A stretch of DNA of 64,000 nucleotides from Octopus sinensis (Eukaryota). The translations under genes and the position numbers were made by a program. The stretch's first letter is position 1; each line of letters begins with the position of its first letter. The notes beneath the pieces are model-generated. The model ran no database searches. It saw only the letters and a list, made by a program, of their open reading frames with translations, and had not been told where the DNA came from. Where the stretch lies: positions 38,750,001-38,814,000 of the forward strand of contig NC_043013.1 in NCBI RefSeq assembly GCF_006345805.1, written 5' to 3'. Shown one piece after another: positions 14,301-61,929 of this stretch.

Positions 14301-15705
14301 AAACACAAAACACAAAAAAAAAAACAAGAAAAAAATAGAATAGAAAATAGAGAAAAACAACCTCTACAACCATAGTAGTGGAGGCACATGGCCTAGTGGT
14401 TAGAGCAGCGGACACACAATCGAGGGATCACGGGTTCGAATCTCAGACCAGGTGATGTATGTGTTTATGAGCGAAACACCAAAGCTCCACGCTAATGGTG
14501 AACTTCTGCTGACTCTTTCGCCACAACTCTCTCTCTCACTCTTTCCGCTCGCATCTAGCAGCTCACCTGCGACGGACCGGCGTCCCATCCAGGTGGGGAA
14601 CCTATACGCTAATGAAACTGGGAAACCGGCCCTTATGAGCCACACATGGCTCAAGAAGGAACAAACACCCATAATAAAACTAAGAACTGTTGCAAGTGAG
14701 AGGTGTCAAACGTCTGGATGTTGACCAACTAATGCTGAGCCACCAAAGCAACCTTGGTACAGTCACTTGACCTGGTAGAAATAGGAAGCGAATCTCCCTC
14801 AAAAAGGAAAGGCATTGCACAATGTGGTCCTGGATACAACTGGTCGGAATTATCAGAAGGGATGGTTACAACTGGACTGTCTTTGATCATAAGCACACTG
14901 GATCTGGACTGGCCTTGGGAGGGGTTAAACAACAGCAGCAACTACAGGTGGTGCTGCAACTACTTCTACTGCTACTAACTATTACTACTACTACTACTAC
15001 TACAACTAGTAGTAGTAGTAGTAGTAGTAGAGCCAAAAGACAAACCTCTAAGCAGTCACTCAACTGGCAAGGAGTAGCAGCCAAAAATGTAGAGCTGGAC
15101 ACCATGGTGTTAGAAAAATCCGAAGGGATTAGAAGGGATGGCCACAGTTGGAATTACTTCAAATCGTAGGTCTGCTCAAATCATAAGTGACTCGGGGGTT
15201 TTTAATAAACAGCAACCAGAATCAATAACAACTACTACTACTACTCTAATAATAATAATAATAATAATAATAATGATAATAATAATAATAATAATAGCAA
15301 TAATAATAATAATGATTGCTTTATTAACCACAAGGGTTAATAATAATAATAATAACAATTGTATGTTTAACTAACAAGTTAAAAAAACAATCAACTAATT
15401 GGTTAGATATTTAATTAATTGACTAACAATAGTAAAGAAGTGGAATTGAACCCGTGTGTGTGTTATTGGTGCTATGACTCTCCCAAGACACAACAAAAAT
15501 AACAATAATAATAATAGAATAAAGATATCCCCACCCACCCCAGTTCATGCCTCATGCAGGAAATGATAAATAATTAAATAAAAATAATAAACAAATAATT
15601 GAATAAAAAAAATTGAATGAAATTAAAAATGATAAATTAGAAAATATGAAATAATCAAATAAAAAAAAAGATGAATATAATTTATATCATTGCCTTAGAG
15701 GATAC

Positions 15706-15807
15706 AATCTGATGTTGATTGGTGGGACTTCGAAGGAGTAATTTGTTCATCTCTTGTCTTTTCTTTCCTTCACGCTCTTGAGCTGCGAATGAAGTCTTTA
15801 ATTCATT
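15706..15807 (-). CDS. FAM92: FAM92-like copy A exon 5 (NELKTSFAAQEREGKKRQEMNKLLLRSPTNQHQI)
   Basis: ttaattgcag acceptor, gtatcctct donor, 102 nt, phase 0. Aligns to DDLKATLTARNREAKQLTQLERTRQRNPSDRHVI (recalled). Confidence 0.88.
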
Positions 15808-18800
15808 CTGCAATTAAGAGGGGATAAAAGGTAAAAAATAAATCTTATGATAATTCTGCTTGTCATTGTGTTACTTAGCCCATCAGTAACACTTTCATAT
15901 GATTAGAGAAAAAGAGAAAGAAAAGAGGGAGGGAGTTGTGAGGCAGAGGGAAGGTAATTGTAAAACTTTCAGATGATTATTTAAAGGAAAAGAGAAGAGA
16001 AAGGAAAACGAGAAAGAAAAAGAGGATAAGGCAAAGTGTGAGACAGAAAGAGGGAGAGAGAAGCATCCATGACAAGAGGTAGGGGGAATGTAATATTCAT
16101 CACATGGTTAAAAAAGTTAGTTGAAAGTAGTGATGGTATAGAGGAGGAGAGTTAAAAATATAATTTTAGCAGAGGGGTGATGTTCTGATGATGAGGTTAA
16201 AGAAAAGCAGAGAGAGAGGGGAGAGAGAGAAGGTGAGAGAGAAAGGGTGACAGAGGAGGGAGAGAGAGAGATGATAGAGGTGGTGGTGGTGATTGGATAG
16301 TGAAAAGTGTATTTTTTTTAATTGAACTAAGTTTTTTAAATCACCTATCACTTAACACATGTGCATAAGTGCAATTGTTTAAGGGAAAAATAGAAAAATA
16401 AGAGTGAACATTTATTTTACAAGTGCTGTGTAGTAAGTTTATAAAATTGGGCATAAAGTATATAAAGTGTATATATAAAATGCCTTAAGTAATCATCGTA
16501 TTCCAATTTCGTTCATTTTTCAATGAGTAGCAGATGAGCAACTATCTTTTTCGATAATGTTTTCAGAAATAACCCAATACGTTTAATTCCGTGAAATACT
16601 AAATATTCAATTTAGTAAATAAATAAAAAAACATGAATAATTTCAAAATTATTTTGAAATTTATCAAGAAATGAGAAAGGAGCCTGCCAACCAGAGAGTA
16701 AATACATTATCCCTTTAACATATCTGGTCCAAATACTCTATCTGTTTTATGCTCAAAGTAGCCAGATCTAGCCTCTCAGACTTAGCCAACAATGCCATTC
16801 TAAAAAATAAACAATCACAAATTCAAAATCTCAAAGCTACAAGATAATGCATGATTAATTCAAAATAATATGACTAAATAAACATTACCTTTGACAGAGC
16901 AATCTGAATGTTAAAAGGTTAAAGCAAGGATCAGCAAAGTGGCTTGTACTGAACCCCTAGGCAGCCTATGAGATATCCAAGGGATCAATAAACACCTAAA
17001 ATGATTTTGAGCATTTAGGGTGCTGAATTATTAGCAAACTAACTCTGGACAAATGCAGAAACTATTTTCCAGGCAAAATATGGATTCACTAACTAGTACT
17101 AACTAAAGGCATACTTCACAAGAAATGTTCCAATGGCTGTGTGGTAAGAAGCTAGCTTCCCAACCACATGGCTCTGGGTTCAGTCCCACTGCGAGACACC
17201 TTGGGCAAGTGTCTTCTACTACAGCCTCGTGAATGGATTTGATAGACAGAAACTGAAAGAAGCCCATCAAATGTGTGTGTGTGTGTGTATACATACATGT
17301 GTCTGTGTGTGTGTGTGTGTGTGGTGTGTGTGTGTGTGTATACATACATGTGTCTGTGTGTGTGTGTGTGTGTGTGTCTTTGTTTGTACCTCATCACCAT
17401 GTGACAACAGGTGTTGATATGTTTACACCTCAATAACTAAGCAGTTCAGCACAAAGTATCCGATAGAATAAGTACTAAGCTTAAAAAATAACTCCCGCAG
17501 TCAATTTACTGACACTAGTAAAAGAATAAAAGAACATAACAATAATATATGACTGAAATTTTATTGTTCTTTATCAATTTTATTCTTTTACTTGTTTCAG
17601 TCATTTGACTGTGGCCATGCTGGAGCACTGCCTTTTAGTTGAGCATATCGATCCCAGGATCGATATGCTCTTTGTAAGCCTAATACTTATTCTATCGGCC
17701 TCTTTCACCGAACCACTAAGTTACGGAGACGTAAACACACCAGCATCGGTTGGGGGGACACACAGAGACACACACACACACACACACACACATATATATA
17801 CATATACATATATATATATATACATATATGACAGGCTTCTTTCAGTTTTTGTCTATCAAAATCCACTCACAAGGCTTTTGTAGGCCTGAGGCTATAGTGG
17901 AAGACACTTGCCCAAGGTGCCACACAGTGGGACTGAACCTGGAACTATGTGGTTGGTAAGCAAGCTACTTACCACATAGCCACTCCTACGCCTACGCATA
18001 GGAGCGGCTGTTCAGTATTTTCATTAAATTTTGTTAAATAGTTCTTATCGAAAAGTGGTAATGACACAGAAGGACAAAGAAATTATTGTTTTTAAATCAA
18101 GAAATATTTTATTAATTCATCATCATCATTATCATCATTGTTTAACTGTCTGCCTTCCATGTTGGCATGGAGTGGACAGTTTGACAGGAGCTGACCAAAC
18201 TTCTGTGTCTGTTTTGGCATGGTTTTTACAGCTGGATGCCCTTCCTAACACCAACCACCCAACAGAGTGAACAGAATGCTTTTTACATGTCACAAGCACA
18301 GGGGAAGCATAATTTTACTTTCAAAAGAGAAATTCAATGTTATATGCTGGAGGTCAGTAAGTTATCGACATTGCCATAAAGAGATCAATGACATAATTTA
18401 TCTGCTGACCTCTGCATTAAGTGGACACTTAAGTTGATGAAAATGAGTAAAAGGATACACTAATTAGATGAGAAGCCAATCAATCAGGCTATTGATGATT
18501 AACAATTGCTTTGCATTAATGTAATTGAAGAACAGATATGGAAAGATGAAAATGTGACCAGCCAATTAACGTATTACATTTAACGAATACGTTAACAAAA
18601 ATACATAAACACATGTAAGTGAGATGAGACAGAACCAAGCCAATCAAGCTGTTTAATTAATGAGGGTTTGACATGAATAAAAATTAACAGACAGACAGAC
18701 ATCAGAGATAAGAAAGAGACTGGCCAGTTAAAGTGCTACATTTAATGAATGCTTACATTAATGAAAATGAGTGAATAAATACAGGTAAGATGAGAAAGAG

Positions 18801-61393: not shown

Positions 61394-61495
61394 AATGAAT
61401 TAAAGACTTCATTCGCAGCTCAAGAGCGTGAAGGAAAGAAAAGACAAGAGATGAACAAATTACTCCTTCGATGTCCCACCAATCAACATCAGATT
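61394..61495 (+). CDS. FAM92: FAM92-like copy B exon 5 (one change versus A: AGT Ser to TGT Cys)
   Basis: Same acceptor and gtatcctct donor as copy A; single substitution at 61472. Confidence 0.83.
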
Positions 61496-61929
61496 GTATC
61501 CTCTAAGGCAATGATATAAATTATATTCATCTTTTTTTTTATTTGATTATTTCATATTTTCTAATTTATCATTTTTAATTTCATTCAATTTTTTTTATTC
61601 AATTATTTGTTTATTATTTTTATTTAATTATTTATCATTTCCTGCATGAGGCATGAGTTGGGGTGGGTGGGGATATCTTTATTCTATTATTATTATTGTG
61701 ATTTTTTTGTTGTGTCTTGGGAGAGTCATAGCACCAATAACACACACACGGGTTCAATTCCGCTTCTTTATTATTGTTAGTCAATTAATTAAATATCTAA
61801 CTGATTAGTTGATTGTTTTTTTAACTTGTTAGTTAAACATACAATTGTTATTATTATTATTATTATTATTGCTATTATTGCTATCATTATTATTATTATT
61901 ATTTTTATTATTATTCTTTCTTTCATTAT

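Follow-up and report, generated by a model that had tools for sequence, protein, structure and literature searches.

Inverted arms around a unique spacer, gene conversion between the arms, and a better preservation of genic sequence characterize the sex-chromosome palindromes of primates and mouse (the human Y palindromes P1-P8 and the X palindromes), whose arms are more than 99.9% identical and hold whole, mostly testis-expressed genes. A related arrangement is found at human F8, where the intragenic repeat int22h has an inverted copy outside the gene, on its 5' side, and in the inverted repeats of FLNA-EMD (Xq28). Recombination at F8 intron 22 inverts the promoter-proximal part and breaks the gene, while the FLNA-EMD inversion is a benign polymorphism; int22h itself is 9.5 kb long, approximately 99.9% identical to its partners, hundreds of kb away from them, and contains no F8 coding exons. 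Local inverted copies lying tens of kb from their source, with repeats or microhomology at the breakpoints, are also known from fork stalling and template switching or microhomology-mediated break-induced replication (FoSTeS/MMBIR), as in the duplication-triplication/inversion-duplication (DUP-TRP/INV-DUP) rearrangements at MECP2 and PLP1, which are recent and pathogenic and have had their junctions sequenced. Finally, long-read assemblies may contain false haplotypic duplications, i.e., near-identical neighbouring copies that differ by single-nucleotide polymorphisms (SNPs) and by insertions or deletions (indels) of transposable elements (TEs); these usually occur at contig ends or gaps, show allelic divergence, and are gone in other assemblies. 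Here, we describe a 64,000-nucleotide stretch of the Octopus sinensis genome (referred to as the window; CM016875.1:38,750,001-38,814,000, GCA_006345805.1) in which a part of FAM92A, the orthologue of CIBAR1, is present as two inverted copies, arm A and arm B.

The octopus locus shares with the sex-chromosome palindromes the inverted arms, the unique spacer, the conversion, and the better preserved genic sequence, but it differs from them in that its arms are only 97.4% identical, patchily homogenized, and carry a gene fragment each, so that the identity above 99.9% and the complete genes in the arms of a classical palindrome were not found. Its spacer is as long as an arm and holds exon 1 of the gene, again unlike in those palindromes. 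Compared with int22h, the octopus repeat includes exons 2-5, lies 15 kb from its partner, and is 2.6% diverged, and no inversion was seen between two species. As in the FoSTeS/MMBIR cases, a local inverted copy lies tens of kb away with repeats at its breakpoints, but the octopus junctions are millions of years old and their mechanism is one that we infer. None of the usual marks of a false duplication holds for this locus, which has not been described before and belongs to a common class, the inverted segmental duplication of part of a gene.

The arms were mapped by seed-and-extend repeat finding and by a BLASTN self-comparison of the window, which linked 15260-32628 to 61939-47501 in a single collinear chain of eight inverted blocks (Table 1). 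Two long reverse-complement arms that remain collinear throughout are what defines an inverted segmental duplication. The arms measured 17,369 bp (A) and 14,439 bp (B) and the spacer between them, in which the self-comparison detected no large internal symmetry, 14,872 bp, in agreement with the approximately 17.3, 14.4, and 15 kb proposed in an initial annotation made from the sequence. The outer limits given there were also confirmed, although they turned out to be slightly narrow, the re-measured ends at 15260 and 61939 being about 70 to 80 bp wider. A global alignment of the two arms comprised 13,955 aligned columns with 368 mismatches (2.64%), i.e., 240 transitions and 128 transversions (ratio, 1.9), and 59 indels, only 14 of which were of 1 bp; this spectrum of substitutions and indels points to evolutionary change and not to read error. 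The window has a G+C content of approximately 38% and contains no Ns, and the nearest assembly gap lies approximately 20 kb to its left. The assembly of O. sinensis (Li et al. 2020) is reportedly PacBio-based. The O. sinensis locus of FAM92A isoform X1 (CM016875.1) matched window positions 1-44780 with 100% identity over 44,780 bp.

Both arms carry four FAM92 exons (exons 2-5) with AG/GT splice sites and an open frame, and all eight splice sites are intact. As was given for the arms in the initial annotation, the exons point away from the spacer, on the minus strand in arm A and on the plus strand in arm B. The spliced exons encode 137 amino acids (aa) that matched the Pfam family FAM92 (PF06730; E=2.8e-32; 112 bits, cut-off 23.6; profile positions 17-150 of 225) and were 99 to 100% identical to the O. 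sinensis FAM92A isoforms, with X1 and X2 as the best matches. A sequence of human FAM92A served as a lead only, by which exons 2-5 could be placed but neither exon 1 nor those after exon 5; all statements on exons were re-derived from the O. sinensis proteins in the database (by TBLASTN) and from Pfam. In the annotated order, FAM92A runs from exon 1 in the spacer through exons 2-5 of arm A into the left flank, the remaining exons lying beyond the left end of the window. Since an exon specific to isoform X1 is found in the left flank, the complete gene continues leftwards from arm A. The working gene is made up of arm A, the exon 1 of the spacer, and the exons to the left, and only arm A is part of the complete gene. 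Copy A of the BAR domain is complete in the annotated gene, whereas that of arm B covers only the profile positions given above: arm B is a head-to-head gene fragment corresponding to residues ~11-148, or about the first two thirds of the domain.

The FAM92A orthologue of Octopus vulgaris (protein CAI9735111.1, OX597830.1), which covers the arm A region, was used as a third sequence; its locus aligned collinearly with window 431-44337 at 95 to 99% identity. Over 13,052 gap-masked columns, 229 sites were private to B, 219 to O. vulgaris A (A_vul), and 83 to O. sinensis A (A_sin). The private sites were clustered along the arm, with long runs alternating by type (runs test, z = -9.1). A two-state segmentation of the site patterns among A_sin, B_sin, and A_vul divided the arm into tracts of two classes. 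In the first class (6,689 columns in total), the divergence was 0.94% between A_sin and A_vul, in the same range as the divergence of the two species in the single-copy flanks (0.72 to 1.34%), 3.08% between A_sin and B, and 3.21% between B and A_vul. Since A is here 0.94% from its O. vulgaris orthologue but 3.1% from B, arm B predates the species split. It is approximately 3.3-fold deeper than that split in these tracts and is not a trivial recent copy, as the initial annotation had already argued. With a split of O. sinensis and O. vulgaris approximately 2.5 million years ago (PMC10700109), a clock extrapolation would put the age of the duplication very roughly at 8 million years.

In the second class of tracts (5,912 columns in total), the mean divergence between A_sin and B_sin was 1.25% and A_vul was the outlier; the closest tracts differed by as little as 0.18% (18422-20184) and 0.46% (22468-23623). 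Tracts in which A_sin equals A_vul and differs from B thus alternate with those in which A_sin equals B_sin and differs from A_vul, which is the pattern left by arm-to-arm gene conversion. The second class is most readily attributed to conversion that took place after the species split, and the exchange between arms foreseen in the initial annotation is borne out by these tracts (0.18 to 0.5% between A and B in some of them versus 3.1% elsewhere). Double crossovers, that is, two inversions with different crossover points, would give the same mosaic, through intermediates in which exon 1 is split from exons 6 and beyond. For the inversion of the spacer, which had also been named as a possibility, no evidence was found, the orientation of the spacer relative to arm A being the same in both species. 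From the converted fraction of the arm, the rate of conversion may be estimated at ~2e-7 per site per generation.

The insertions and deletions that the initial annotation had ascribed to the individual arms turned out to be real. Arm A of O. sinensis contains a Tc1/mariner element with inverted ends of approximately 26 bp, flanked by TA dinucleotides inside a tract of (TA)n, and both arm B and O. vulgaris A have the empty site. The transposase of this element is split into a 195-aa N-terminal helix-turn-helix (HTH) open reading frame (ORF) (HTH_Tnp_Tc3_2, E=1.8e-17) and a 101-aa C-terminal ORF with the motif DNAPSH...DLNPIENLW, and with its ORF so interrupted the element is probably not autonomous. 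Two segments of arm A have no counterpart in arm B. One of them, of 1.0 kb (20578-21602), is present in arm A of both species while B has a 6-bp filler in its place, so the difference is a deletion in B; an insertion in A was ruled out because O. vulgaris A also has the segment. The deletion scar cuts off a short interspersed nuclear element (SINE) that is complete in A. The other segment, of approximately 0.5 kb (29417-29898), is rich in microsatellites.

The inner end of arm B is marked by a full-length SINE-like repeat, of which only approximately 85 bp are left in O. sinensis A (32548-32632). A full copy is present in O. vulgaris A as well as in B, which makes the difference a deletion private to O. 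sinensis A; a reading as an insertion was rejected on the strength of the O. vulgaris orthologue. Prior to this deletion, the homology between A and B may have included the adjoining SINE and extended as far as ~47129. Past the first ~85 bp, the SINE of B is 88 to 90% similar to that of O. vulgaris A, which is the range of unrelated copies of the family. A possible origin of the inner junction is a recombination of two copies of the SINE, which this similarity neither supports nor contradicts. At the outer end, arm B is followed by a run of ORFs (Table 1) for which a Pfam search found no match. One of these ORFs has a 40% identical protein-level paralogue in the spacer (37270-37516, minus strand), so that the stretch is TE-derived; the string of ORFs is probably a decayed ORF1 of a retroelement. 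Arm B may thus abut a TE insertion, and the homology could in principle resume beyond the window.

A counterpart of arm B is indicated by the annotation of O. vulgaris, whose assembly (PMC10700109) was made de novo with NextDenovo from Oxford Nanopore Technologies (ONT) reads, passed through purge_dups, and scaffolded by Omni-C. A gene model of 812 aa with the Pfam domains FAM92, Cu-oxidase_3, Cu-oxidase, and Cu-oxidase_2, in this order, is found there on the strand opposite to FAM92A; it begins 8.2 kb upstream of that gene and is directed away from it. No FAM92 exon was found in the 10 kb upstream of O. vulgaris FAM92A. The model matches arm B of O. sinensis in position and orientation. Its first coding exon of 32 nucleotides (ATG...AAG/GT; window 42544-42575) has the phase of the true FAM92A exon 1 and differs at 5 of the 32 positions in O. 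sinensis, which is above the level of neutral DNA. The model is probably a prediction merging arm B with a neighbouring oxidase gene. It lies at positions 1-1764 of the O. vulgaris locus, which correspond to window ~42544-44337, and rightwards.

We consider the locus to be a genuine inverted segmental duplication of a part of FAM92A that is older than the split of O. sinensis and O. vulgaris, with a probability of about 0.83. Four observations weigh against this. The two junctions of arm B are located in repeats (a SINE and (ATT)n), a kind of sequence in which false joins are also made by assemblers; a difference at only one of 412 exonic nucleotides inside tracts diverged by ~3% would fit alleles of a constrained gene and not a dead fragment; arm B of O. 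vulgaris is known from the length, strand, and Pfam content of a gene model, not from an alignment; and the placement of B before the split relies on a rough molecular clock and on three sequences without an outgroup. If arm B were the second haplotype of the arm A region, mis-inserted in inverted orientation 15 kb away in a genome that is truly single-copy, near-identical exons would be expected together with introns that differ by substitutions and by the presence or absence of TEs, as is the case here, and the heterozygosity of octopuses is substantial (1.22% in O. vulgaris [PMC10700109], taken as a proxy for O. sinensis). Such a mis-join, the main alternative put forward in the initial annotation, is nevertheless highly improbable. 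Neither junction of arm B has a gap or contig end, and there are no Ns in the window; the flanking DNA of arm B is on neither side allelic to that of arm A, and two independent false joins only 15 kb from the allele would therefore be needed. The unconverted divergence between A and B (3.1%) is approximately 3-fold that between A_sin and A_vul and approximately 2.5-fold the heterozygosity of O. vulgaris, and the apparent 1.0-kb insertion in A, shared by O. vulgaris A, is really a deletion in B. The boundaries at gaps or contig ends expected of haplotypic false duplications, and their divergence not exceeding heterozygosity and younger than the split, were both absent. In addition, the independent, purge_dups-treated assembly of O. 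vulgaris has its FAM92-domain model in the matching place and on the matching strand, and it is very unlikely that two different assemblies would make one and the same false inverted insertion.

The same data bear on a real but recent duplication, which would have occurred in O. sinensis once the two species had separated, so that the depth of B would be apparent only and reflect the faster decay of a non-functional copy. The tracts in which A and B are almost identical, such as the 0.18% of 18422-20184, would agree with this. However, the arms are mostly intronic and presumably near-neutral, so a relaxed constraint cannot triple their divergence; A_sin is far closer to A_vul than to B in the 6,689 columns of the first tract class; the DNA lost from B in its private deletion is still present in arm A of either species; and the copy appears to exist in O. 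vulgaris as well. A recent origin is thus very unlikely.

The exons of the two arms differ at 1 of 412 nucleotides, compared with ~11 differences expected from the non-exonic divergence (Poisson P ~2e-4), although three of the four exons lie within tracts that are otherwise 2 to 3.3% diverged. Each exon is situated inside an island of 184 to 470 bp that is identical between A and B, and identical blocks of at least 190 bp hold only 26% of the identical columns. The divergence between B and O. vulgaris A was 0.9% in the exons and 3.3% in the flanks, and the working copy shows a similar ratio. Conversion at ~2e-7 seems too rare for selection on A alone to police B, and some direct constraint on B is therefore plausible. 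All these features, together with the intact splice sites and reading frame, speak for a functional arm B on which selection would act directly. Its exons 2-5 might supply the 5' portion of a chimeric FAM92-multicopper oxidase gene, give rise to a short half-BAR protein, or yield a transcript that pairs with the FAM92A exons, and the O. vulgaris annotation (EVM/PASA) does put these exons in a protein-coding model. We regard a functional arm B as possible, if somewhat unlikely. It has no exon 1 of its own, and the first exon of the model in O. vulgaris, with its 5 differences in 32 nucleotides, has the look of an ab initio prediction. Searches of the cluster representatives (57-1220 aa) yielded no other octopus protein with these exons, the 812-aa O. 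vulgaris protein evidently not being among the representatives, and no O. sinensis gene is called within 10 kb upstream of FAM92A. By a rough estimate, selection at the protein level alone would have left about 3 synonymous differences, but there are 0, and the islands of identity reach up to 270 bp into the introns; both observations are more in keeping with short conversion tracts than with coding constraint. It would also be biologically odd for an oxidase that is normally secreted to be fused to a cytosolic half-BAR domain. Exact protein look-ups of the outer-junction ORFs, a 151-aa ORF specific to arm B, isoform X2, and the O. bimaculoides exon 1+2 model (P0163) found none on record.

Arm B is thus most likely a non-autonomous fragment, the exons of which are nevertheless kept nearly identical to those of A. 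That selection maintains it in one of three specific roles is unlikely. It could be a lineage-specific chimera of the first two thirds of the FAM92 BAR domain and a multicopper oxidase, as the O. vulgaris annotation has it. The inverted FAM92A exons could alternatively provide a long perfect complement for the formation of double-stranded RNA; octopuses and their relatives are known for massive adenosine-to-inosine (A-to-I) RNA editing. Or else recombination between the arms could flip the promoter and exon 1 back and forth between the body of FAM92A and the side of arm B and the oxidase.

On the favoured reading, a stretch of approximately 14 to 17 kb of FAM92A, from intron 1 to intron 5 and including exons 2-5, was copied in reverse to a site approximately 13 kb upstream of FAM92A exon 1. 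One breakpoint is in an (ATT)n microsatellite, and a tRNA-derived SINE contains or adjoins the other. Breakpoints of this kind, together with the local and inverted nature of the copy, fit a replication template switch or a break repair at repeats as the probable mechanism; the exact junctions are blurred by later events, namely, a deletion and possibly a TE insertion. Following the duplication, the arms have diverged to ~3% wherever they were left untouched and have each acquired private TE insertions or deletions, and they would also have repeatedly swapped tracts of 0.1 to 1.8 kb by intrachromosomal, non-reciprocal gene conversion, in part after the species split. The maintenance of the arms by this tract-wise exchange is better supported than the mechanism of their origin.

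Two further observations concern FAM92A itself. A hydrophobic stretch (AQVIIFVFVLVESVNSWIT) midway along the BAR domain is encoded by the exon specific to isoform X1, which looks like exonised intronic sequence rather than a conserved exon. The O. vulgaris model of FAM92A is 402 aa long and spans 80.7 kb, versus 326 to 343 aa and 46.9 kb for the O. sinensis models, and its C-terminus differs from that of O. sinensis, the acidic, D/E-rich tail being absent; this suggests that the 3' end was annotated differently in the two species.

The window also contains diverse repeats (Table 1). At least 12 copies or fragments, 75 to 93% identical, belong to one family of tRNA-derived SINE-like repeats of approximately 450 bp, each with an internal (CA)n/(TA)n microsatellite; the repeat at the inner end of arm B is one of these. 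Scanning the window with Rfam and for tRNAs gave no matches. A 66-bp minisatellite of 3.8 copies is present in both arms (20089-20337 and 56741-56989), while a 217-bp tandem repeat (50106-50515) was detected in arm B only, the matching part of A differing in length. A degenerate dinucleotide (AT/TG-rich) microsatellite array of 1.05 kb with a G+C content of 19% lies in a FAM92A intron (10262-11314), and shorter arrays of this kind are found at 29068-29234 and 36567-36788. The left end of the window (1-964) is a direct tandem duplication of a ~460-bp unit (1-459 and 503-964; 98.7% identical), partly built from repeat families that are also present in the arms.

Table 1. Features of the inverted repeat, the FAM92A exons, and the associated repeats (window positions; paired ranges are given as arm A / arm B)
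Feature	Position	Strand	Remarks
Arm A	15260..32628	-	Exons 2-5 and introns 1-5 (partial) of FAM92A; belongs to the complete gene as annotated
Spacer	32629..47500	.	Unique; FAM92A exon 1, presumably the promoter, SINE copies, relic of a TE ORF
Arm B	47501..61939	+	Inverted partial copy; exons 2-5, without exon 1 and without exons 6+
Inverted block 1	15260-16376 / 61939-60844		
Inverted block 2	16375-16550 / 60760-60586		
Inverted block 3	16546-17288 / 60552-59794		
Inverted block 4	17498-20577 / 59620-56501		
Inverted block 5	21603-24213 / 56494-53878		
Inverted block 6	24291-25043 / 53668-52905		
Inverted block 7	26788-29416 / 52857-50219		
Inverted block 8	29899-32628 / 50228-47501		
FAM92A exon 1, coding part	34749..34780	-	MNRSGAEITS + AG, donor GT; single copy in the spacer, serves arm A only; TBLASTN 34780-34751
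Exon 2, copy A	30457..30572	-	
Exon 3, copy A	24556..24680	-	
Exon 4, copy A	22666..22734	-	
Exon 5, copy A	15706..15807	-	Ser codon AGT, base at 15729; long form of isoform X2 to ~15694
Exon 2, copy B	49545..49660	+	Identical to A
Exon 3, copy B	53279..53403	+	Identical to A
Exon 4, copy B	55352..55420	+	Identical to A
Exon 5, copy B	61394..61495	+	TGT (Cys) at 61472 versus AGT (Ser) in A, the sole exonic difference
Alternative FAM92A exon, isoform X1	4520..4585	-	Left flank of arm A
Tc1/mariner element	25044..26753	-	Private to O. sinensis arm A; ends start CACTTGCGTCGG... and CACTACCGTCAG...
Scar of the ~1.0-kb deletion private to B	56495..56500	.	6-bp filler; A counterpart 20578-21602
Full-length tRNA-derived SINE-like repeat	47129..47580	.	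Inner end of arm B
(ATT)n microsatellite	61900..61990	.	Outer end of arm homology; A counterpart ~15190-15290
Right flank of arm B	62230..63985	+	Frame-shifted ORF run, Q/N/H-rich stretches, CX2C-containing segment
SINE-like copies, among others	12361-12748, 17578-17994, 21279-21718, 35300-35690, 40270-40702, 46433-46921, 47129-47580, 59087-59540		

The case of FAM92A illustrates that, even without recourse to reads, the orthologue from a sister species allows a real inverted duplication to be told apart from a haplotype mis-join. Short reads from FAM92A exons 2-5 will map ambiguously and mimic heterozygosity, e.g., as a false Ser/Cys SNP, and, as the 812-aa FAM92-oxidase model of O. vulgaris suggests, prediction programs can run arm B and its neighbour together into one gene. 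The locus is also a documented instance of tract-wise gene conversion in the genome of a cephalopod. If the arms recombined, exon 1 and the promoter would be inverted and a cilium gene thereby knocked out, in a manner similar to the F8 intron 22 inversion; if the exons of arm B are expressed, they would constitute a young chimeric gene common to two octopus species.

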